Below, piece by piece: positions 7,486 through 24,905 of a stretch of 46,135 nucleotides of DNA. The notes beneath the pieces are model-generated. The model saw nothing but the letters and a program-made list of their open reading frames with translations. It searched no databases and was not told where the DNA came from. Position numbers and translations under genes: made by a program. The stretch comes from Klebsormidium nitens (Eukaryota; Plantae; Klebsormidiophyceae). How positions within the stretch are numbered: position 1 is the first letter of the stretch; each line of letters starts with the position of its first letter. The DNA lies in the NCBI GenBank assembly GCA_000708835.1, contig DF237173.1:90855-136989 (forward strand), written 5' to 3'.

Positions 7486-7570
7486 CAAAGTCCGTGTACG
7501 TTTTGTGCATCAGGGAGGAAAAAGACAAAGTCCGTGTACGTTTTGTGCATCAGGGAGGAAAAAGACAAAG
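7486..7570. repeat. Perfect 40-bp tandem duplication
   Basis: caaagtccgtgtacgttttgtgcatcagggaggaaaaaga occurs at 7486-7525 and 7526-7565, followed by caaag. Confidence 0.95.
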
Positions 7571-10500: not shown

Positions 10501-11142
10501 GCTTCACAAACATTGGGCTTATGTCCATATGCAGCTGATTACATATTTGAGGAAAAGGGACCAGTCTGGCGAATAATCAGTTGAGCTTAGACTAGCTCGG
10601 CCAAGTATGCATCCAATATATAAGCATAAGAGTTGCTCACTAATCGGATCGACTCAAAAAGCAGCATGCACTACCATAAAGCCCGTTTGAAGCTGGTGGC
10701 CTGCCCTGCACAAGCGCAAGGCTTCTGTCCTTATCTTCAATTGTGAAAGTCCAATTGCGGACCGTCAGCTGAAAAATTAGGTTTAGGTTGACAATCTGAT
10801 TGAGCTCGAACTAACTTCTGCTAAGTAAGTCCAGATGTTAAGCCTGCTTTTTGTTTGGAAGCAGGAGAATTGGCGGCAAAGTTGTTTGTGGCGTGTTCGA
10901 CATCGTCGGGCTTCCTGACTGCGAAAAGGATCCACCGCCGTTGACACAGAGAGACAATGATGCAAATATTCAAGAAGTTGACTGCTAAGCAGGCTGACTC
11001 TCTGACTTGAGTCTTCGTTTGTTGGACAAGTAACCGGGCTTTGACCTTGCCTCAAGGCTGGTTCAATACCGCCCAAGTCTGGTAATACTAGACATATGAC
11101 CACTTTCTAACCAGCCCAGAACTGGCCAAGAACCAGCCTTGG

Positions 11143-11991
11143 TTAAATGCTACAAAAACTCCTGTGGTTAACCGGACACCTCATTTCGGGGGCGGCGGAG
11201 CAGGGATCACGGCCCGGAGGGGGGCAGGGCGCGGGCCAATTTAGGGAGGCGGAAATGACAATCGCCGGTGGGGGTGGAGCAGGAGTGGAGCACCGGTTGC
11301 AGGGGAAGGGTTGGCGGCGCTGCTTGTTGGAATTGGGGTGGGTGCGCTTGTCGTTGCAAGTGGGGAGGGTGTCAACTTGGCAGTCGGGGCGGGGGTAACT
11401 GGCGGCGGTGCCCCGGCATTCGCGGGCGGTGGACTCCCAGTCCCGGTGGGGGGGAGGCGGCAGCCTTGCCAAGGGGTGGGGGCGGGTTGACGGACGGGGA
11501 TGGAGCACCGATTGCAGGTGGCGGGCTGGCACTTTTGACGGGAGGCGGTGCATTTGAAGCAACTTGAGGGGGGGGTGTTTGAGCCACTTCCAAGGGGGGG
11601 TGGCGGGACGGGGGTGGGTGTGACGAGGGGCGAGCCGCTCGTTGGAAGGGGGCTGGGTGTTGGACGGGGGGTGGGTGCGCTTGTCGGCTTGGCAGTTGGG
11701 GCGGGGGTAACCGGCGGCGGTGCAACGCCTTTTGCGGGCGGTGGGTTCCTGTTCCCGTTGGGGGGTGGAGCGGCAACCGTGCCAACGGGGGGGGCGGGTT
11801 GACGGAAGCTTTCGGGGGCGGTTGCGCAAGCGGGGGGGAGGAAGTGGGCTTGGGTGGGGGGGATCCCTTCAGGGGGAGAGTTCTGGTCGGGGTTGTGACT
11901 AGTGGAGGAGCGGACGGCTTGTTTGGAGGAGCGGGGCTAGAAAGAATCGCCGGGGGGGGTGGGTTGGAGGCCTTTGCCGGAGGCGGAACGC
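11143..11991 (-). pseudogene. Proline-rich (extensin/AGP-type HRGP-like) coding segment with several frameshifts; pseudogene or assembly errors
   Basis: Acceptor tccttacag at 11992, then GVPPPAKASNPPPPAILSSPAPPNKPSAPP... and APPPVKSASPPPAIGAPSPSVNPPPP. An internal ~120-bp repeat (about 11690-11815 vs 11375-11495) only aligns in one protein frame if 1-nt shifts are allowed at G7-G8 runs (about 11790, 11572, 11450). Further shifts occur near 11285 and 11240. No 5' exon or signal peptide was found. Confidence 0.55.
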
Positions 11992-14435
11992 CTGTAAGGA
12001 ATCAAGACCCTGAGCAAGAAGCCCACATGGACACGACTTTGCTGTTCAGTCTGGAGTAACAACTATTGTGACTGCATTGCGACTATTGAACGGACTAGGG
12101 CACGCCGAAAAAGCCGTTTAATAGCCTGATTTTGACAAAAGCCACAGAAATTTAGAGACCCGTTGCACGAAGTCAAGCTACTTTACCCGCACCCTTCTCG
12201 GTCGGAATCTTTCGTAACGCTCTGCTCCTCTGCTCGGTGCTTTCAATGGATTGATCTTGGCGGCTATGTGCTCATATGAACCCTCCGAACTGAGATCGAT
12301 CCGATATTTTTCCAAGACGAAAGGGAAGTCTCGTCTCAAATCGAAGGGAAGATTCCTTGTTTAAAGAGAGGAAAATTCCGTGCAGAGAAAGTTCTAGGCC
12401 ATCAATAGAAAAGCTCTGGCTCCGAACTTGAATAGCCTACTCGCGATCGAGCAGGGAAAGCAATATTCTCCGCCGCACAAGAGATGAACGCGAACGAGAC
12501 GATCAACCTTGCCAAAGCAGATTTGAAAACACATCGGTTTTCCCTGACCTTTCAATTGAAAGAAACACAAGATGGTTTTGTACTCTACTCGAGGGTCAAT
12601 CGCATCCACGTTCGCCGCCCGCGCATAGCAAAGGGCATATACTGCGGACCAGTCTAGTTGACAAAGCTTACCTTATGTGGATTTAAGACAGGCAACTTGT
12701 GGTCTTGGCCGACGAATGTGAGATGCACAATACGGTGACTTATGATGCGAAGAATGCCGAGCTGCGCGAGTAAATGCGATGAACGAAAACGCTCCAGCTG
12801 GCGAGTCCTGCACGATGCCGTACGCTCAAGAATCAGAACCTGCACCGCAAATCCAGAGATCCAGCTTGACTGCGACGAACCCGTTCGGATGATCATGCAG
12901 GGTTGCATATGATCCATCATGGCTCGAGGGTTGTTCATATTGCCAATCGTTCATCGTTGCACCATATGAGACTCAAACATTGGAAGCCATGCAGCTTTTC
13001 TGACGTCTGCAGGTGGCATATTCTGGCACTAGGCCAGTCACTCTCCGGTGATTGCCAAGTTGTTACTGCCTTGCAGAGGCTCTCTCCATTTCTCCGCTTG
13101 CGGTAACTTAGTAGCGTACGGCTGCTGCCGCGGGAGCACTGCGTCCGTTCAAGTTCAATCAATGTTTCATATGTACTGCGCAAACTTGAAGCTATAAAGT
13201 GACCAAGTCTGTCGCTCTCGACTCGGAACATCTCGACATGGGAGTCTCGCTAGCAGGAGCTCTGGGATCCTGAACACCTCGTATGGGTTATCTTTATCTA
13301 GCTCGTACTCCTTTCTAGTATGATGTGGCTCACCAGGCTGCTCAGCGTCAAGTCAATAATCGACGACTAATTCGACCGATCTTTGCCCTTGTGAGCGCAG
13401 GCTGCATGAAACAACAAAAACACGTTACCGAGCCGCTTTCGCATGCTCTCAATTGTGTAATTCGGCACCGTGTTGACCACAATCACGTAGAATTCTCTCA
13501 TGTTCCATCAAATGCACGCGTTTCCGGATGCAAGCGCGGGCACAAATGATTTTTTGTTCATTCAAGAAGTGAGAAATTGCAGCACGTCATGCTACGTACT
13601 CACGATTATCAGCAACGATTATCCAGAAGTGTCACATGCAATGATATTGCTTGACTTGAGAAGCCTGACACGGCGCCTTTTTGGCACGTCTCGGCTGATC
13701 TTGGAGAAATGTCAGATGACGTCAGTCATGTCTGGGTCTCGAGTCCGCCAAGTAAATGTCGTGGGTCGGGCCGGCCAGAGTGAGAAGAGTTTGTTATCGT
13801 TCTACTGACTGCGTCTGACGTCAAGAATGTGTACCCATCTACCGTAAGCACCACGAAGAAAGCCGATGCTTTTGTTGTCACTAGCCTGCAGCTCTTTTGA
13901 GTAAACGCATAAGTCTGTTGAGGCGTACAGATTTTGACTTGTTTCGTCGGCGTGGGTAGCCTACTATTTTGACTTACTCGGGCGTGCAACGTCCTTCTAG
14001 ACTAGCTGCAGCTTTTCGAACGGTCGAACGGTCCTACCGTAAGCTCTGCGCGTGGTGTAACTTTGACGAATCAGTGTACTTTGAACGTAATCTGCAAACC
14101 GTTGCCGAAAGTGGACTAGTACACTTCCTGTAAGGGGACCCTTCAAAAGGGAAATATACCATGTCTACAAGGACGAACTCAGCCACAATTGTTGGGCCGA
14201 ACCTTATATGCAAATTCCTATATTTTTGGTACTAGTGACGCCGTTGCGGACGTAATATCTCTCACTGCGGATTCGAGACCTTTGGTCACAGTCTGTGTCA
14301 GGCTCGATTTACCATGACGAATTGGCCGGAGTATTGCCGTCGCTTAATCTCAAACGAGTCATGCCTTGATCAAGTTTATATAAGTGTTCCCCCGCAGTGG
14401 GCACTGCTCCCGCATAAGCTATACCTCGGGGGCGG

Positions 14436-17400
14436 TCACGCGCTCGTGGGCTTCCCTCCCGGCCGCTGCCATAGCTTATGAGTCTCGGGGTAAAGCGTAA
14501 CGTTCCATTTATGCCGCCGGTGCCGAATCTCCCTGTCTTGCTGCGCCACCCGGTTGGGGTCCACGCTGCTGACGTGGGCCACGTCCATGATGGCCAGTTT
14601 CGGGTACGCCACGCGCACGATCGTGCCGTTCACTGCACCACACGTGGCAGAGGGTGACGTCAGGACTTGAAGTTAGCCGCCTAGAACTTTCATGACAAGC
14701 AGGGAGGAACCCAGTTCCGAGAGACTTTTATATCAGATCTCCGGCAGTAGAAAAGCTGAACGTGACGTAGAGATCCGGGAAGACGCAGAAACAGAGCAGC
14801 AGTAACCCTGGCGGAGTACTTTCGGCGAACAACGGCAAACGCTGCCGTCCGCTTAGGATATCGTGAAGCGGCTTTTTGAGTCCAAAAAAAGTGTTGCCTG
14901 AAACTGAAATGAAACTCGAAAGTGGGCTCTCAAAGGGCTGGCTTCTCAGAAAGATGGAGGCTTGGTAGGATGCTGGGGAGTCAGTAAAGTCGACACAGTT
15001 TTCAACAAGCCCGTCGACTGGAAAGACTGGAAAGACGCTAGCGAAGTTCCAAATTGTTCCAGCCCTTGTTGTCTACATCACGCGGCTGCGACTGCGACTC
15101 CAGCAGCGTGTTGCTTTGAAAGTCGATCTCGTACGCACGCTTCCGACATTGCTGCAAAACGCCCACAAGTACCATTGCTCAGCCGGCTTGGATTCCAGAA
15201 GACCTGGTAAAACGGCCTCTGAAGGAAGCAATCGTGCGGCTTTGATAGCAGAGTTTAGTTTTGATTCCGGTGTCCTTACGTGTTATGTGCTTGAACACGT
15301 GGTCGAAGGGGAGGGATCCCCCGGCCAGCTGCCGGTTCGCCCAGTCAATCAGATATTGATACGTGTGCTGACTGTACAAAACGGCGAATGAGCCATACGA
15401 TCGCAGATTGGCGTTATAACACAGCTTCCCCGACGCATCGTAAACTCTGTGCTGTATCTCGTCCTCGACCCAGTTCCACGTGTCGGCCCGCCATTCGCTG
15501 GCGCCCAGCTTCAGGATGCCGCCCCTGCGGGCAATACAATCTTGCTCGGAGTCAGCTCCAGCGTGTTTGCTTTGAATCTTAACGGGCCAGCCTAAATCAT
15601 CCATCCAGGATTGAATCCTCTGTACAAGCAGAGTGGCAAGAAACTACCCATGAGCCTTTAACACTCTTGTGCAGGTCTCGGAAGAGCGTTTCACCGTTCT
15701 CCCACTACTAGAATTACCGGGCTGCGTTGCTGCCCTCAAGAAGTTAGCTTTGTCTAGTAGTCGTCTTTGTATCGTTCAGAATCAACGAGCGACCGGTTGA
15801 AAACCCGGTACAGAAAGAAGGCCTCACAGTCCCCCTCCATCAAGAATCCCTTTGGTGCAACAGCGAACGTCCATCCACAAAGAAACCGCGGAAAGGGATC
15901 GGTAAAAAGCAATGCCCTCAACGCAACCCCTCTTCCGGGTCGTTAAGAGGCGACCGGAAAGAGGGGTCAGCAAAAGCGAGGGCCTGACCCCACTTCTTCA
16001 ACAAGAAGCCGCCGCACCGGTCGTTTTCACCGAGTACATGCTCCTTCGCTACCTACTTTATGGGTTGCACAAACCTTCACAAAGTGAGCGGCGACATTGG
16101 TTGATAAAAAAGGAGCACCTTCTCAGGAAGTCCGCGCATCAATCACTATTGTCTCTCCAGCAACTGACCAAGCGTGGCTTAGCAACGCCTTTTTCTTATA
16201 CGCAATTGAAGAAATGGACTTGGGAAAAAGCCAAGGCCTTACATCCCCCCCCCCATCAAAAAATCCGTGCACCGATCGCTGCTCCTGAGTACGTGCTCCA
16301 GCCGCCGGCCGGATTCTTGGTGCAACAGCGAACCTCCATTCACAAGCGACCGAAGGAAGGGGTCGGTAGGAAGGATGCACTCAATCCGACCGCGAGAAGG
16401 GGGCTTTTAATCACAAGGGCCTTACCTTCCCTCCTCCATCAGAAACCCAGCACACCGGTCGCTGCTCCTGAGTATGTGCTCCAGCCGCCGGCCAAACTCT
16501 TGGTGCAACAGTGCATCGTCGTCGAACACCAGGAGCGCGCGCGCGCGCCGCTGCTGGGCGTCCGCCAACAGGTCCCGCATGGTCGCCAGATAGCCCACCT
16601 CGCCCGGCTTGAGCCGATAACCCGGGCGACCTGCATGCTAGCGTGCAAGATTTGTTCGTGTAAACTTCGAACCATGGGTTCGGGATTGCATTATGATTGT
16701 GGCCTAGTAGGCTGGACGCAGACAGAGACAGCTTTGAAATGGTGCGTTGCGGCGTTCTGGTCGCCTTATGCCAGCCATGTTTAATTCTCGCGACTTTAGC
16801 GGACTCCTCGCACATCCACCTCACACGACCTTGATCTGTGCCGTCAACAACACATGTGAGCATTCGAGCACCCACTGAAAAGCATCCGACGGCCAAAATA
16901 CTCTGATCAGTCCCTTGGCAGACGGTGCACTCTCGAGCAGCAAAAGCCTGCAAGAATCAAAGAACCCACTTTCACGATAAGAGCGGTACCTACCGGGCGG
17001 GATCGGATCTCTCTTCTGGTCCAGCGCAGGCACGTAATCTGGTTTGCCCGGGGCCTCGGTGGCTCGGGAGCCGTACCAGGGGCTCACTTTGATCCCGTGG
17101 GCCGCGGCCGCGGCCGCGACTCGCTGCCAGCGCTCCTGTAGAAAACGAGGCGAATGCAACTGTAGGTCAATACTCACGGGCCGTAAACATGGTTTGGTCA
17201 TCCAAGAACAATCGCATTCTTTATACTCCTGTACAAAGAGTGTTCGTTGCTGTCCAACCTTAACCTTCTCGTTGATGATTGGGAACGACAGGACAGGAGA
17301 GTTCTTTGGAGCGCTCGTTTAAAATGTGCGGCTGCCTTTGCGCGCTTAGTCGCACTTGTTTCGAAGACGAACTTTCCTCAATTTGTTTTCGGAGCCGATG

Positions 17401-20400
17401 CTGGGCTTCTTGATAATATTCGTGCAAGGAGGTGAATTCCAAGTCTTTGCCTCGATTAGTAGTTCGGGATCAACGGTAGAAGATCAAACTTTTGGTGGAG
17501 TTTGTATCGACCAAGCTTGGCAGGGACCACATCAGCGACTCGAATGCCACAAATTCCTGCCACCCACACTGTGAGAGTCCGTGTTCGTGGCCAGTAAAGT
17601 AAACAGACTTCGGCTGCCGGTTGTTCGAGGAAACTTGTTGTCAAGCGTCCTTGAGGATTTTATGGCGGACCAAAGAATTGCGTGCACGAGAAAGTGAAAA
17701 CCAGCAGAAGTGAGTCAAAAGACGAAAGCTCGCTGGTTAACGATCTTAGATTGACGTGTTGCTTATTACCTGGCCAGGCAGTGTCAAGACATACGCCTCG
17801 AACCCATCCAGGAAGCCTTTGACACTTCCGCGCGCTCCGCTTTCCGGTGGGCACTCCCTCGGCCGGAAGTCCAGCTTCTCTCGGAACAGAGTGGAGTAGC
17901 CTCTCCGCTCCAAAATATCCTGACTAACCGCGATCGGATTAACGTGACACGCGGGTTTGGGAGCCCCGGCTCCCTGTAACACGACTTTGGTCGAGCTCAC
18001 GACGCTAACCGTAGAGTTAACTACCTTGAGCACGGTTTGCTCAAATCCGCCCTCGACCACCAGCTGCCGGACTACGTGCTGACTTAGTGGGTTATGGCTT
18101 AACTCAAGGAAAAGTTTGACGAAATCCTCGAAGAAGTGTACATTTGACCCAAATCTCAGTTGCTCTAAATTGGGTAACCCTGGAGCGTCTAGAAACAGCT
18201 TTCGGCGGCCGTTTGCTGCTTCGTCCGGTGCTGACGTCAGCAGCAACGAAAGCGCCGCTCTTCCTTCGGGCGTCAAGACGTTTTCAAACGTAATCCTAAC
18301 GGCGTCGTAATAACCCAGGGTTTTTCTAATGGACGCAACTAAGTTGCTTAGGTTGACTGCAGGCAAAAGTTTCGGGGTAGCCCCCTGAGGGGCCACGGGG
18401 ACCGCCCTGACGTCAGCGCTTCCCCAGCAGAGCGCAGAGTGTGGCAAACCCTTTGGTTTGTTCCCCTGGTTAGCGCTAACCCTAACGAGCGCCGGAGCAC
18501 TTTCGGCTCGAATCGCCAGCTGGACGCTCCGTACGAACGTCCGGTTAAGCCCCGGTTTAGGCCTAACCTCCATCCTCGCACTCGACGTGGCCGCCCATTC
18601 CGCAGAGTCGCTCAGGATGACCCGTTGCTGAACGGAAACGGACTGGAGGTCAAATATTTCGCCGATTGGCACCACGTGGCAGTCTGCGGACTGGAGGTGC
18701 GCGAGCGAAGCCCCGTTTCGTGGGGAGGCCCTGTTGGCGCAGCCGCTGACTGAGACGTGGGAGGGCATAACGAAGGTGCGGTTCAAAAACAGGGCCTCGG
18801 TTAGGCCGCAGACGAGGCTGGAGTAGAGGCCGTCGAAGCCGGTCAGGCTTGAAAGGTGGATGTCTTCCCAATATAAGTACCTGCAAGCGGCAGAGAAACA
18901 GTATAGGTGATTGAGTAAGGCGTTGTTCGATCAAGAGCACTTCACATCTTTACAATCTCGTTGCCCAAACGCAAAAACAAAGAACCGACTAGTGCCAGGT
19001 TGCACAATCTGAAGAACCGGGCTGCGTTACACAGCTTCTCCATCGTTTCCTTGCACGGGCACGACACAAGGAGAATCCCACCATGGCATGGACAAAGTCT
19101 TTGCTAAGAAAAAATCCCCATTCGAAAACACAAACTTTCCATCACTTAGATGTTGGCGGCCGAAGACGAAGCCGTGCTTGACCTTCTGCGCAAATACCCG
19201 AACAGCCCACAGGAAAACGTCGCATGCAATCTCGCTAGCTCTGACACAGCTCTTACGCCGTACTAAATCAAACATGTCGCACCACATCTGCTGACGTCCC
19301 TTCAAAAGCTCACCTGGCCTTCTCCGTCACTTCCCGCATCTGCCGCCGCACGCTCTCCACGTGATCCGTCAGAAACCCCGGCGCACGCGGTTTCACAGGG
19401 TGCAGGCTGATCGCACCGGCGAGGGGGGGTGGGAGCACCGCCGGAACGACCCCCTGTTTCTTTCTCGCGGGCCCATCGTCACCCGTGACGTAATACTGCA
19501 CGAAGAGCTTCTTGAGGTCCCAGTGAGTGTACGGCTCCGCCTCGCAGCCGATGCCCACGTGGCGCGCCACGCACCGTCCGATCTCCGTGTCGGAGTGCTC
19601 GCTCGCCCAGTCGGCCTTGCAGGCCGCCACGTGGGGGCCCATGGCCGCGAGCGCGCGCGCGTTGAGGAGGTAGCCGGGGCCGCCCAGGCAGTACGGGATG
19701 ACGTCACCGTATCTGCATGGGAAGGTCCCAGGAAGTTCTGGACGCTTGACAGAACGGCAAGTTCCTTCATCCGGAACAGCGTGCTCTTATGAAACTCAGC
19801 GTGCCGTATCGTTGCGACGTATACTGCTAGTAATTAAAACAACGCCTAACGGCCCCCTTGCCTCGGAAGCCAGCAGATGAAGGGGAATAGAGACGAGCTT
19901 TGAGTTGCGAACACCTCAAAAATGAACCTCGGAATAGACACCTCCTCGCAGTCGGAAGAGGGCCGCTAAATTTTGCTGTCCTTTCCCGGAGCAGCCGGCA
20001 CTTCCAGAACGGTTTAAAGCAGGCAAACGCTTCACAAGCATCTTCGACATGACATGTCTCGTTACATTGCGTTCGAGCAAGATCCAAAACGAAAGGAAAG
20101 GGGGACGAAGTGGTCAACACATGAGGGTAAGGTACCCAACGACGACGCTGCAACAAGCAGTGTCAAATTTAGACCGTAGACGACTTCGACAACAGATGTC
20201 GCTTGAAAATTCCGTCCTACTTTGATCCATACAGAATCCAGACCACACAGGATTTCTGATGTCTAACAAGCTCGTATGGAAATTTTTTTGTCAACTCACT
20301 TTCCGAGGGGTAACCCGAGCTTGTGCCCCTGCCGGTCGCTCGGCCGCCCCTGCCCAGGGGCGCCCACGTAGAGCGGTCGGTTGGACCTCCCGGCCGCCGA

Positions 20401-23400
20401 AAAGCCGTGCAGAAAAGCCCGCAATCTGCCCGGTTCCACGTACGTGTCATCGTCGAGATGCATGAACCAGTCAAAGGCCCCCTGGAATTGCTGGTGTAAA
20501 TACTCCCACATCGCGAGGTCCTTGAGTCGGGGAGGGTACTCGTCGCTGCAGAATGGGCGGCAAATGAAACATAACGGAAAGCAGTTGGGTACTGTACTAT
20601 ATCTGAGGTCAGGGTCGAGCCGAATGGCTGAGGGTTGATCTTCGAGAGCGAACAAGGTCAAGAATCAGCTTTTAACTGCACGTGGCACGATTCTATTTTA
20701 GCAAGCCCGGTCCTCGGAGTCCCACACTTCGAGCGCAGGAGGGAAATGACTCATCATTTGGCCTCCTCTGAGGCTTCTCAATAACGAGGCCTATGCAATC
20801 CCCATACGCCTCTTGTGTCGTAGTCCACTGAACGAAGTGTTCCGTCTCAACGGACAGAAGCAAACAGACGGTCCAACAGAACATCCTCGCGGCGCTAAAA
20901 CCATAAGTCTGGATGAAAGAAAGAACTTCGTACTCACCTGACGTTCAGCCAGACTAAACGAATGCCCCCGTGCGCGCGTGCGAGCGCGTGCGCGCTCTCG
21001 TTGCTCGTGCTGTTGCCTACGAACACGATGACGTCAGCGTGCGGCGCCAGGACCGAGTAGAGCGGCACGAGGCGCTCGCGGAACTGCGACTCGGTCGCCG
21101 TCGAGAGCACGCCGATCAGGAGCGTCACGGGGGCGTCCGGGCTTGGGACTGCGGACGGACGTCCGGCGAGCTTCTGGACAACGGCGACCTGCGGGGGGGG
21201 GTTGTGAGGGGCTTAATATCTTCGAGGAACTGCGACTCGGTCGCCGTCGAGAGGACGCCGATCGGGAGCGTTATCGAATTGGGGGCCGCAGACGGCGGTC
21301 CGGCGAGCTCCCGGACAGCGGCGACCTGCAGGTGAAGGTTACCGGTGTTACGGGCTGTTAGGGTCACTAAATGAATCACGCTTGGTCGCCGTAGAGAGCA
21401 CGCCGATCAGGGTCCGTCACGGGGGCGTCAAGGTTCGGGACTGCGGACGGCCGTCCGGCGAGCTTGCCAACAACGGCGACCTGCGGATGGAGATTACGGG
21501 CTCTTAGGGTGTCAAGGAAATTACTTTCGGTCGTCGTCGACAGAACGGCGATCATGAGCGTCACGGGGGCGTCCGGATTTAGGGCCGCGGACGGCCGTCC
21601 GGCGAGCTTCTCGGACAACGGCGACCTGCGGATGGAGGTTTAATGGGCTATTAGGGTGTTAAGGAAAAAATTCTCGGTCGCCGTCGAGAGCACGCCGATC
21701 AGGAGCGTCACGGGGGCGTCCGGGCTCGCAGCCAAGGATGAACGTCGGCGGCTTTCGGACACTGGCGACCTGCGGATGTAAATTTGGGGTGTTTTGGTCG
21801 CAAAGAAATTGCAAACGGTTCCCGTCAAGAGCACGCCGATCAGGACCGTCGCATGGGGAACGGGGCCGCAAACGGCCGTCGGGCGGGTATTCAGATGCTT
21901 GCAATCCGCGATATCAGTTCTCAGAGCAAATAGTACGCGGTGTTCAAAGCGGGTTTAATGTTACTGTCCGCAAAAGCTCCCCAACCATGAGGTTGATACG
22001 GATAAGCTGCGAGATTTTACGATCTCAAAGCGACTTTGCGTCGGTAGTCGACAACGAGCTGGCCATGACCTTGGTGGGGCCGTCCGAGCTCAAGCCCCTG
22101 GACGATCAGGAGTCCTTGGATGAGACTTCTTTGAGTCCGCAGTCGCAAATTCGGAGCGTTAGGGAATGCTGTCGTGTCCAGATAGACTAACAGGATCTTT
22201 CAAGAAAGCCGTTGTTTGTACAGAAACAGATTAAAAGCACCCATTCCTTTAAAAGCCCGCGAACAGCCTGAGAGCACGCCTTCATTTCTTTTGTCATTAT
22301 CATTCTTCGGCGCTCAAGCAAAAGCAATAAGAGTCTCCACCCTCTTCCTCTCACATCTCAGAAAGTAACACCGTTACTGAACCTGCAACGTGATATCTGT
22401 ACAATGCGCCACGACACTATACAACAAAGAAGAAGAAATGCAAAACCGCAGTGGCATCAGAATTGCTGCTTTTGGCTAATCGTTCCGTGGCAAGAAGGAA
22501 GCATGCGTTCCGGTTCACGTCGAAGACAGGAGACTTTCACCTCCTTTCAACCCCAGGATTGCAGATGGTATATTATGGTCCCAAAGCCACTCATGCCCAA
22601 CATCGAAGCTGCTGAAACAGAGTGAATATAATAGAGATGGCTCTGCCAAGGGAACGGTCTGGAGCTCAATTACATCCCAATCTCTGCCAGAGACACTCGT
22701 TTGACTTGGGTCGGATTGTCTCACGCCGAACCCCACTACTCTCTTTTCAGTCTGAAAAGAAAGAGCGCTTCTCTTATGTCTTGAGAGACTGCAACTCAGG
22801 CGCGCCTACATTGTAAAGCCAAGAACTACACGAGTTTTTGGTACTTCACCAGGGATGGTTCTGGGCTGAGAATGGGCTGGTAAGAAAGTGGTTATACATC
22901 TGATAAACAGACCTGGGCGGAAGCCCAACCTTGGAACAAGGTTAAACCCACTGTTAATTGTCCAATAACCTGAGAATTAAGTCTGGTTATCAATCTGGTT
23001 AGCAGCCAAAACTTCCACTTCGGACGCACTAACCTGAGACTCGAGCATCTGCTGGCTGGCTGGCAGCCTCAGACTCAGCGCATCGAGTGCCAACAGCGCC
23101 GTCCCCCCCCCGCGATTGCGAAACTCGAGCCCCGCCCACAATTGCCACTCGAGGCCCCTGAATGCAACGCCGACCTCAGCCCAGCCCTCCGTCAGTCGAA
23201 CCTCCACCTCCCCCCCTTTCACAACGTGAAACCTCCTCTTGTCCCACGAATGTAGTACCAACTCAAATGGCGACAAACCTGAGCCGCGCAGGCGTAAGGC
23301 CACCCCTATGATACTGGGGAACGCGTCGTTCGATTCTAGCAGGAGAGACGAGCCCCCCGGAACAGAAACCTGCAGCGGTCCCACCAGGCTCGTCTCTAGT

Positions 23401-23801
23401 TGCTGCCCCCCCTGAAGGAAATACCGCCAGCCGTCGGCAAGCGTACCCCCCCGATAAACGGTGCGCTCCGCAACGTTGCCCTCGGAGCAGCACTCGGCGC
23501 CCTCGTCCCGACACCCGAAGAGCGCAAAGCGGGGGTGGATGGTGGCGAGACACTTGAGCAACACGACGCACAACAACACTAACCAAAAAAGACGGCAGCT
23601 GCGCCGGGCGCGGGACTCGTGCCTCGCCGTTTTGGGGGGGTCTGTCGCCAGGTGTTCCAGGGGGGGGATGCCGTAGTGAACCAGGCGGCCCGAGGCGCTT
23701 AAGCTGCGGGGGAAGCCCCTTTTGCGGGAGACCTTAACAGCGATCGAGGTCCACACCGACAAATCTCGAAGTGGGGGGGACTCAGACATACTGGCGCGCA
23801 T
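14436..23801 (-). CDS. Type II membrane multi-domain glycosyltransferase: TM + putative CBM-like domain + GT31 (Fringe/CHSY N-terminal-like) + O-fucosyltransferase-like + GT25-like, ~1187 aa
   Basis: Nine exons with consistent phases and GT-AG ends: 23801-23034, 21188-20938, 20545-20300, 19712-19314, 18880-17770, 17135-16994, 16630-16426, 15524-15280, 14632-14436 (3564 nt). GT31 motifs: LLIGVLST, DEYPP, FDWFMHLDDDTYV, YCLGGPGYLL, EHSDTEIGRCV, ISLHPVK. O-FucT-like: EALFLNRTFVMP, YDAVRI, KLFLDA. GT25-like: AYVLTLPGQERWQRV, LKPGEVGYL..LLVFDDDALL, YGSFAVLYS, LPFDHVF, VAYPKLAI. The start codon and the exon-1 link are less certain than the rest. Confidence 0.8.
15815..16520 (-). repeat. Imperfect tandem array of exon 3' end + splice donor (4 copies)
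   Basis: Donor-like sites GTAAGGCC (16425, the real one), GTAAGGCC (16242), GTCAGGCC (15988) and GTGAGGCC (15827). Each is preceded by a variant of ctgttgcacca...gagca(c/t)(a/g)tactc...ttt(c/t)tgatgg. Confidence 0.85.
21095..21910 (-). repeat. Tandem array (~137-155 bp units) of intron 3' end + acceptor + exon start (5 clear copies plus 1 degenerate)
   Basis: CAG|GTCGCC acceptors at 21188 (real), 21325, 21480, 21625 and 21769. Each is followed by ~90 nt encoding a variant of VAVV.KLAGRPSA...DAPVTLLIGVLSTATE. A degenerate copy lies at about 21820-21910. Confidence 0.92.
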
Positions 23802-24905
23802 GGTGTCTTGGCCTCTGAGCTGGGGCAATGGGATGTACTGTTTCTAGTCAGGGGGGTGCCTCATGCGGTGGTTGTTGGCGTAATAGCTAGGAGGGCCATG
23901 GGACATGACATGCTGATGGTGACAAAGAGGGTGGTTAGAAGGTTTGGTTGACTGCTTTGAGCGAACAGCAAAAGGTGTGCTTTTGACTTGAAGTGATAAA
24001 CCAGCGTCAGGAGAGACACAAAACCTGCTGCTTTTTGCTCATGACATCCCTCAGCCTCAGATCTTGATCAAACTGCAGCTTCTATGCTAGGTTGAAGTGT
24101 ACACATTGTTGACATTGCTGCCAAAATCTTCCTCTGGCCCGAGACGCCGTACTGAGAGAGCCGCCTGAGCTGCGCGAGGGGTGCCCCTGACCTCAGCAAA
24201 GCGCCCCACTTTGTGATCTGCAAAGATCCCGCCTTGGCAATCAACCTCCTACATTGGCCGCCAAAGAACCCTGTGCCGACACTTTCGTGATTGGGTGCTT
24301 CATTCTTCCTCGTTGGTATGTGTGCTAGAGCCACCGACATGATGGGGCCGTGAGCACAATGCTACCACTAGATCAGTGGTGCGTAGACGATAATATTGGA
24401 ATCTGCTCTAGTGATCACGCTTGGAGGCCGTCGGCCCGGCCCCGCGGCGTCGGAGAGATCGTTTCACACCACAGATCTGCCAGCAGATGTGCGACTATGT
24501 TAGAGTACCGTTGTCATCCAAAGATGTACATTGGGATCTGCTACCTGCAGATCCGGTGAGGATTTTGACATCAATGCTTTCGTCCAAGGTTGGGTCAAGC
24601 GCCATGGCATGTCAAGTGTTGAGCTGACGCCTATGTTGTTGATTTGAATGCTGGCCCCCGCCAGACTTGAACGCCATCTTCTAGCGAGGGAGCTCGAAGA
24701 AGGTCGCGTCTTCCGAGACCAGTATGTGTGGGACCGCACCAGTGTACAACAACCACTGAAAAGTACTGCGCAGTACGGTACAGCTACAGGTCCAGGGTTC
24801 CTTCGGTACTTTTAAGTATTATGGTCCTGCCGGCCGCAGTACGTACTCCGAGTCCAATGCAGTTCTTCGGAACAGTGAACACTCGATAAAATTGGACAGT
24901 ATTAA

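Follow-up and report, generated by a model that had tools for sequence, protein, structure and literature searches.

An expressed Klebsormidium nitens gene encoding a single membrane-anchored protein with predicted GT31, fucosyltransferase-type GT-B and GT25-like domains

Introduction

In the alga Klebsormidium nitens (Klebsormidiophyceae), one expressed gene encodes a single membrane-anchored protein in which three domains resembling glycosyltransferases (GTs) follow one another on the same chain: a chondroitin-synthase-type GT31 domain, a domain predicted to adopt the GT-B fold of the fucosyltransferase superfamily, and a GT25-like domain. The gene lies on the minus strand of a stretch of 46,135 nucleotides (NCBI GenBank assembly GCA_000708835.1, contig DF237173.1, positions 90,855 to 136,989 of the forward strand), referred to here as the window, whose first letter is position 1 of all coordinates given below; the coding sequence runs from 23801 to 14436. 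An earlier note, made from the letters of the window, had read this region as one single-chain glycan assembly line and had proposed that one polypeptide may build a defined trisaccharide repeat or a branched glycan.

The interpretation favoured here, with moderate confidence, is that the product is a Golgi-type type II enzyme in which two competent inverting GT-A modules flank a GT-B module, the latter being most likely a non-catalytic spacer or ligand-binding module. In this article, the gene structure and transcript evidence, the three domains and the distribution of related loci are described, and this interpretation is then weighed against its alternatives.

Gene Structure and Transcript Evidence

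Translation of the minus strand in three frames gives nine coding blocks in changing frames, corresponding to nine exons and eight introns. Transcript contigs from four runs, belonging to four studies, were aligned to positions 14430-20429. These runs contain 40-60% of the words sampled from the 9.5-kb stretch, and their contigs behave as transcriptome assemblies, although the records do not say RNA; they are taken as such because the introns are skipped. Splice joints were observed for six of the eight introns (14633-15279, 15525-16425, 16631-16993, 17136-17769, 18881-19313 and 19713-20299), each joint in all four runs, and all of them are canonical GT..AG introns of the minus strand when ambiguous bases are allowed for, the joint between exons 9 and 8 (14632/15280) being observed with just 30 letters on its shorter side. 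Joining exons 4 to 9 yields an uninterrupted reading frame, 765 codons long, which closes with the stop codon at 14436-14438. A contig of 2142 nt (X8 record 18) covers exons 8 to 3, while another of 4073 nt (X1 record 3) covers exons 7 to 3 together with about 2.2 kb more toward the 5' end; therefore, the three domains share one mRNA, which answers in favour of one gene the question of one gene versus separate genes raised with the earlier note.

Introns 1 and 2 were placed at the only strong sites that preserve the frame, with CAG/GT donors and polypyrimidine-AG acceptors. For intron 1, these are the donor CAG/GTTAGT at 23034 and the acceptor at 21188, a C-run followed by CAG; for intron 2, the donor CAG/GTGAGT at 20938 and the acceptor TTCTGCAG at 20545. 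The donors of exons 1 and 2 and the acceptor of exon 3 occur at the same positions in the related locus L001, and the exon 3 acceptor also in locus L007, split Ser codon included. The full model, with its ATG at 23801, comprises exactly 1187 amino acids (aa), so that the frame of about 1187 aa read by the earlier note from nine exons is recovered, with six joints observed and two introns inferred. Directly 5' of this start codon there is an in-frame stop (23844-23846). Provided that exons 1-3 are placed correctly, the contigs reach about 0.9 kb upstream of the start codon (23802 to about 24750, minus strand), which implies either an unusually long 5' untranslated region or unseen 5' exons.

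Two introns contain duplicated exon material. In intron 1, positions 21076-21900 hold six tandem copies, each of about 145 nt, of the 5' end of exon 2 with its acceptor (AG/GTCGCC) and the coding start 'TLLIGVLSTATES'. The idea that these copies serve as alternative exons was rejected, as their lengths are not divisible by three and translation through them meets stop codons; the frame is preserved only in the copy next to exon 2. Intron 7 contains degenerate fragments that repeat the end of exon 7, donor included, at 15852-15897 and 16235-16362, and the pair 16235-16328 and 16418-16511 is 84% identical. This intron is covered by low-depth contigs and looks like a retained intron or pre-mRNA.

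Membrane Anchor, Stem and Order of Domains

The 5' part of exon 1 (23592-23801, minus strand, as are all coding features of this gene) encodes the start codon and an Arg-rich cytosolic tail of about 70 aa, to which the tail of L001 is homologous. It is followed by the sole transmembrane segment of the protein, a signal anchor at aa 71-89 (23535-23591) with basic residues on its N-terminal side, in agreement with the type II anchor proposed earlier. The anchor is the only 19-residue window with a Kyte-Doolittle mean above 2, and the next is a single window above 1.6, at aa 296 (1.63). The lumenal stem domain (aa 90-256; 23034-23534) is conserved in paralogs at 34-68% identity, with the common pattern W..SSL.L..LH..S..W.GLEFRN.G..LDAL.L. 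Pfam scans of the stem domain, the middle domain and exons 6, 8 and 9 gave no match, and no PDB match to the stem domain was found by sequence profile; a beta-rich fold similar to that of sugar-binding modules is only a guess for it.

Behind the cytosolic tail, signal anchor and stem, the chain would continue with a GT31 GT-A domain, the GT-B domain of the fucosyltransferase superfamily, a short Cys-containing linker, and a GT25-type GT-A domain. Every motif that the earlier note had quoted for the three domains is present, with YPP at aa 343, WFMHLDDDTY at 366, CLGGPG at 430, HSDTEIGRCV at 461 and LHPVK at 525 in the first domain, LNRTFVMP at 587 in the second, and GEVG at 982, LVFDDD at 1006 and YGSFAVLYS at 1084 in the third.

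GT31 Domain

The first domain (aa about 275-545) begins in exon 2 (20938-21188), whose boundaries were inferred, whose donor is kept in L001 and which is colinear by tblastn in L001, L002, L004 and L007. Exon 3 (20300-20545), with its 3' end observed as a joint, encodes the nucleotide-binding part, including DEYPPRLK (20521-20544) and the DDD triplet (20446-20454), and exon 4 (19314-19712), with both joints observed, encodes the C-terminal half, including CLGGPG, the predicted catalytic-base Asp (19589-19591) and LHPVK (19391-19405). Exon 3 scores 30.4 bits against Pfam Fringe (cut-off 21, E 3.3e-7), and exon 4 scores 30.7 bits against the Pfam CHGN N-terminus (cut-off 23, E 1.9e-7). In a search of solved structures, exons 3 and 4 correspond to successive, colinear stretches of human CHSY3 (5.9e-11 and 4.7e-9), and CHPF, Manic Fringe (5.8e-4) and C1GalT1 (0.013) are matched more weakly.

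Nine functional residues of CHSY3 can be aligned (D231, Y233, K238, D261-D263, D342, H394 and K397; native numbering, from which the chain index differs by 31), and all nine are identical in the algal domain. In these alignments, HSDTEIGRCV faces HEDVEVGRCV of CHSY3, and LHPVK faces LHPNK. In CHSY3, D231, Y233 and K238 contact the uracil and pyrophosphate, D261-D263 constitute the DxD motif, D342 acts as the base and H394 is a Mn ligand, and CHPF, the inactive partner of CHSY, has lost the corresponding residues (PMC12748766). Judged by its sequence, the first domain is a chondroitin-synthase-type GT31 domain, as the earlier note had suggested, and because the donor, metal and base residues of CHSY3 are kept, it looks like a competent inverting enzyme.

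Middle Domain of the Fucosyltransferase Superfamily

Exon 5 (17770-18880) encodes the middle domain (aa 556 to about 860, or about 910 in a wider delimitation), then a conserved Cys-containing linker (17848-17949) and, at its end, the strand with which the GT25-like domain begins. The exon has no match in Pfam, including PF10250, even at E 10. An exhaustive phmmer search of 1.84 billion cluster representatives with the middle domain returned six proteins only, namely four algal-type open reading frames (ORFs) from Logan and JGI contigs (85, 54, 28 and 28% identity) and two land-plant proteins (2.5e-5 and 4.9e-4). A search with a profile extended this set by two more algal ORFs and some 25 proteins from land plants, each roughly 400 aa long, with plant matches of 1e-75 to 1e-89; these relatives are named "O-fucosyltransferase family protein" or "DUF7075 domain-containing protein" in UniRef and probably represent the At3g56750 group, as far as length and description tell. 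The profile search also yielded two land-plant proteins of the SUB1 type (P0038 and P0039; DUF7074 and DUF7075), both of which score on PF10250; proteins of this type, which were reportedly once described as Ca-binding light-signalling proteins, form one remote family with the algal domain. The plant relatives match nearly the whole PF10250 profile with 30-37 bits (cut-off 31.5), and the middle domain is tied to this family only transitively, because the plant relatives score whereas exon 5 itself does not. A fucosyltransferase-type GT-B fold has been predicted for both At3g56750 and SUB1/SUL (PMC3522684).

Sequence searches of the PDB with the middle-domain profile and with the plant homolog P0005 gave nothing meaningful. 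An AF2 model of exon 5 from the single sequence (pLDDT 35) was discarded, while a 34-row alignment gave a usable model, for which the top matches in fold comparison are fucosyltransferases only. According to this model, the middle domain has the GT-B variant fold of the superfamily (GT65/GT68/GT23/GT37), which is consistent with the O-fucosyltransferase-type assignment of the earlier note.

The algal domain and its land-plant relatives have the blocks YLYW, LNRTFVMP, YDA and GRT.F in common. In sequence alignment, the plant relatives keep GLGHQ, IHVRRGD (motif I, HxR) and FIASNE, where the window protein reads GFDGL, VRITFEN and FLDA; the middle domain is therefore without the HxR of motif I and without the N-terminal G-x-(H/N)-Q motif. 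The motif I position varies among the other algal copies, which read RIDFAE, KIDSYV, KLMVKV and KVVVKV. Of motifs II and III, the algal copies retain the GR(T/K).F block, in which the Arg (R226 of exon 5) is invariant, but not the ASNE of the plants. The Arg of motif I (R240 of CePOFUT1) is the key catalytic residue and contacts the beta-phosphate, and the His (His238) contacts the guanine, while motifs II and III, which provide GDP contacts, are poorly conserved across the superfamily (PMC3522684). A third transferase activity is doubtful because HxR and G-x-(H/N)-Q are absent and these positions vary among the algal copies.

The domain is nevertheless under constraint, as its dN/dS relative to the L007 ortholog (about 85-92% protein identity) is 0.20, compared with 0.03-0.23 for the GT31 exons, and 39 columns are invariant among seven algal copies. 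Between deep paralogs, the middle domain retains 25% identity, versus 40-62% for the GT31 and GT25 exons. The middle domain is probably a constrained module that is either non-catalytic or strongly remodelled.

GT25-like Domain

The third domain (aa about 915-1150) starts at the end of exon 5 with the strand AYVLTLPGQ (17770-17802), which is conserved in all algal copies; because this first GT25 strand shares exon 5 with the middle domain, the two belong together. Exon 6 (16994-17135, joints observed) contributes the N-terminal part and a low-complexity loop and is weakly conserved (50% to L001). The core is encoded by exon 7 (16426-16630), which contains GEVG (16593-16604) and LVFDDD (DDD at 16515-16523). 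The C-terminal half is encoded by exon 8 (15280-15524, joints observed), with the conserved stretches GASEW..D.W.W..DE, YGSFAVLYS and PFDHVF, and exon 9 (14436-14632, joint observed) provides a C-terminal tail that is kept in L001, L002 and L004.

The exons of the window remain below the PF01755 threshold, whereas the homologous exon of L004, 46% identical to exon 7, scores 34.7 bits (E 2.1e-8), and precomputed PF01755 matches exist on the L004/L005 contigs. A profile of four exon 7 copies aligns GE(L/V)G...LVF(E/D)DD to human GLT25D1 (E 0.2-0.3) and to the bacterial GT25 protein 8xc8, the two together spanning E 0.2-1. In GLT25D1, the motif at 461-463 is essential (PMC12987934), and the aligned stretch GELG...LVFEDD includes it. 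Exon 8 shows 47-84% identity among the copies and 31 invariant columns, and the candidate acidic residues D14, D21 and E22 are invariant in its alignment. Searches of PDB chains and Pfam with the exon 8 profile returned no GT25 chain and no family match, and the catalytic base D522 of GLT25D1 could not be aligned. The third domain can be described, on these similarities, as GT25-like with the DxD motif kept, in line with the earlier assignment.

Distribution and Literature

The three-domain gene is a member of a small multi-copy family. Two JGI metagenomes contain three independent loci (L001, L002=L003 and L004=L005) in which tblastn recovers the whole model colinearly, and most exon borders are shared with related loci. 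A partial ortholog on a 4.4-kb genomic contig from Logan (L007) is colinear for exons 2 to 7, as far as the contig reaches. The sole locus returned by a metagenome scan with the exon 8 profile (L008) was rejected as a chance match of 21 residues in AT-rich DNA. A viral contig collection scanned with the middle domain contained no relative, so this collection gives no sign of a giant-virus origin. The exhaustive phmmer search found no long annotated protein with the middle domain, which is weak evidence, as the annotated proteome of the host is apparently outside the databases. In the full-text literature, no account of GT31, fucosyltransferase-type GT-B and GT25 in one chain was found, in keeping with the earlier note, which did not recognise the architecture as described.

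Proposed Function and Alternative Explanations

In the favoured interpretation, both outer GT-A modules would be active, Mn-dependent and inverting, and the GT31 and GT25 modules would add two different beta-linked sugars successively to one acceptor. The outcome would be either a two-step decoration or an alternating polymer, as in CHSY, EXT and LARGE. The central GT-B module, still under constraint, would most likely serve as a spacer or bind a ligand without catalysing transfer, with the stem likewise serving in spacing or binding; the GT-B module is read as non-catalytic because the canonical GDP-fucose signature HxR has been lost, and the silent N-terminal GT domain of GLT25D1 and the inactive CHPF subunits offer precedents. 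Several points weigh against this interpretation or limit its force. Introns 1 and 2 were derived from sequence, lie beyond the aligned stretch and are unseen in reads. Exon 7 of the window reaches 13.1 bits against PF01755 (profile positions 80-115), below the cut-off of 24, and the model of the middle domain is moderately confident (pLDDT 68). The missing Arg might be replaced by R750, which lies two positions earlier on the same strand and is kept as R/K, or by the invariant R781; purifying selection on the middle domain would fit a catalytic role equally well; and the activities of the domains, deduced from their residues, are putative throughout. Furthermore, some plant PF10250 proteins without HxR are still suspected to be transferases with other GT activities (PMC3522684).

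The last of these points also bears on the proposal that all three domains are active, with one chain assembling a defined three-sugar unit or a branched glycan, for which the GT-B module would need either an unconventional active site or some donor besides GDP-fucose. This proposal can draw on the predicted fucosyltransferase-type GT-B fold, on the selective constraint described above, and on polar residues of exon 5 that are invariant among the algae (D77, Q79, E94, W95, R133, R226, N314, R333, R341 and E342), R226 being invariant across plants and algae alike. However, an essential active site should be conserved, and the HxR and G-x-H-Q positions are not only altered but also vary among the algal copies, in the domain that diverges fastest of the three between paralogs. 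The proposal is therefore regarded as possible but doubtful, and a third transferase in the GT-B module as a less likely reading than a spacer. Of the three-domain trisaccharide builder envisaged in the earlier note, the three domains on one chain have stood, while the third catalytic activity is doubtful, owing to the absence of HxR and G-x-(H/N)-Q. As to the product, whether a repeat or a branch, for the wall or for mucilage, any statement is pure conjecture.

At the other extreme, a single outer domain could be catalytic and the others scaffolds, giving one activity with large accessory domains, as in GLT25D1. Inactive GT domains are precedented in GLT25D1 (PMC12987934) and CHPF (PMC12748766), and the catalytic base of the GT25-like domain could not be located by alignment. 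Nevertheless, this arrangement is very unlikely, considering that the GT31 domain keeps all nine alignable donor, metal and base residues that the inactive CHPF lost, and that the GT25-like domain keeps DDD and GEVG along with the invariant columns of exon 8. An artefact, in which a chimeric assembly, or a row of two or three genes, was mistaken for a single gene, is extremely improbable. Although introns 1 and 2 were not observed and the contigs are assemblies rather than single molecules, the joints of exons 4-5 and 5-6 cross the domain borders and are canonical, in frame and present in four independent studies; the first GT25 strand shares an exon with the middle domain; and the parts follow one another in the same order in the three other independent loci as well as, over exons 2 to 7, in L007. 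Three separate genes were rejected, since splice joints cross both domain borders.

Comparison with Known Systems

The architecture represents a variant of known multi-domain glycosyltransferases, in a combination that was not found described. CHSY1 and CHSY3 (GT31 GlcA-transferase plus GT7 GalNAc-transferase; PDB 9o4g and 9q8z) are likewise type II proteins of Golgi type, composed of tail, anchor and stem, with an N-terminal GT31 domain and then a second inverting GT-A domain, and the algal GT31 domain aligns to residues about 231-398 of CHSY3. They differ in that their second domain is GT7, whereas the algal protein has GT25, an inserted whole GT-B domain and an extra stem domain; moreover, the organism is a green alga from which no chondroitin is known. 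In other multi-domain glycan builders, including LARGE1 (GT8 and GT49), EXT1/2 (GT47 and GT64), PgtA of Dictyostelium (galactosyltransferase and fucosyltransferase) and A064R of chlorovirus PBCV-1 (three modules), several transferase modules on one chain act in succession on one glycan, a feature that the algal protein would share. We know of none among them that combines GT31, a fucosyltransferase-type GT-B fold and GT25.

GLT25D1/ColGalT1, which consists of an inactive GT2-like domain and a catalytic GT25 domain, resembles the algal protein in having a C-terminal GT25 domain with GE(L/V)G...LVF(E/D)DD after a GT-fold domain, and the non-catalytic nature of its N-terminal GT domain provides a precedent for a silent GT module (PMC12987934). 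It differs from the algal protein as a soluble endoplasmic reticulum (ER) enzyme for collagen hydroxylysine, in contrast to a membrane-anchored protein in which GT31 and a GT-B fold are the partners of the GT25-like domain, and the similarity is weak (E 0.2-0.3 per exon). The nearest named relatives of the middle domain are the land-plant O-fucosyltransferase family of about 400 aa and SUB1/SUL. Each of these is a type II protein in its own right and retains GLGHQ, HVRRGD and FIASNE, whereas the algal domain, which has a GT-A domain on either side, no longer shows these motifs.

Other Features in the Window

Several features outside the gene were recorded. A single ORF of 841 aa on the plus strand (158-2683) encodes an immune-receptor-like protein with TIR, NB-ARC and LRR domains (TNL type), whose closest relatives are on Logan/JGI contigs (68%), followed by NLRs of land plants and Marchantia. 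The land-plant affinity of the middle domain and this neighbouring TNL fit a streptophyte host. A perfect 40-nt tandem repeat of 2.1 copies is located at 7486-7570. At 11100-11880, the plus strand carries a G-rich, internally repeated block (GC 0.65, GC skew 0.38), and a minus-strand ORF at 11143-11829 is rich in Pro, Cys and Arg and has no Pfam match. Further on, a plus-strand ORF at 31396-31989 matches the Peptidase_M16 inactive domain (1e-6) and probably belongs, as a single exon, to an M16 peptidase gene nearby.

Implications

Multi-domain glycosyltransferases are rare, and CHSY, EXT, LARGE and GLT25D1 make biologically central glycans. A more speculative view, considered rather unlikely as a whole, is that streptophyte algae of the Klebsormidium type possess lineage-specific single-chain synthases in which GT31 and GT25 would alternate to produce an undescribed beta-linked polymer of the wall or mucilage, either glycosaminoglycan-like or galactan-like, while the remodelled fucosyltransferase-fold domain would hold the chain or add a third sugar.

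The gene is expressed and multi-copy, which makes it directly testable. For the uncharacterised putative Golgi transferases of land plants, probably At3g56750-like and SUB1-like, no closer relative than its middle domain is known, and the role of this domain could inform them. A published survey lists no plant entries for GT25 and, for the green and red algae that it covered, records the family only in Micromonas (PMC3797821). Because the family has no land-plant entries, the presence of such a module in an alga closely related to land plants points to a chemistry of the wall or matrix that is missing from the latter.

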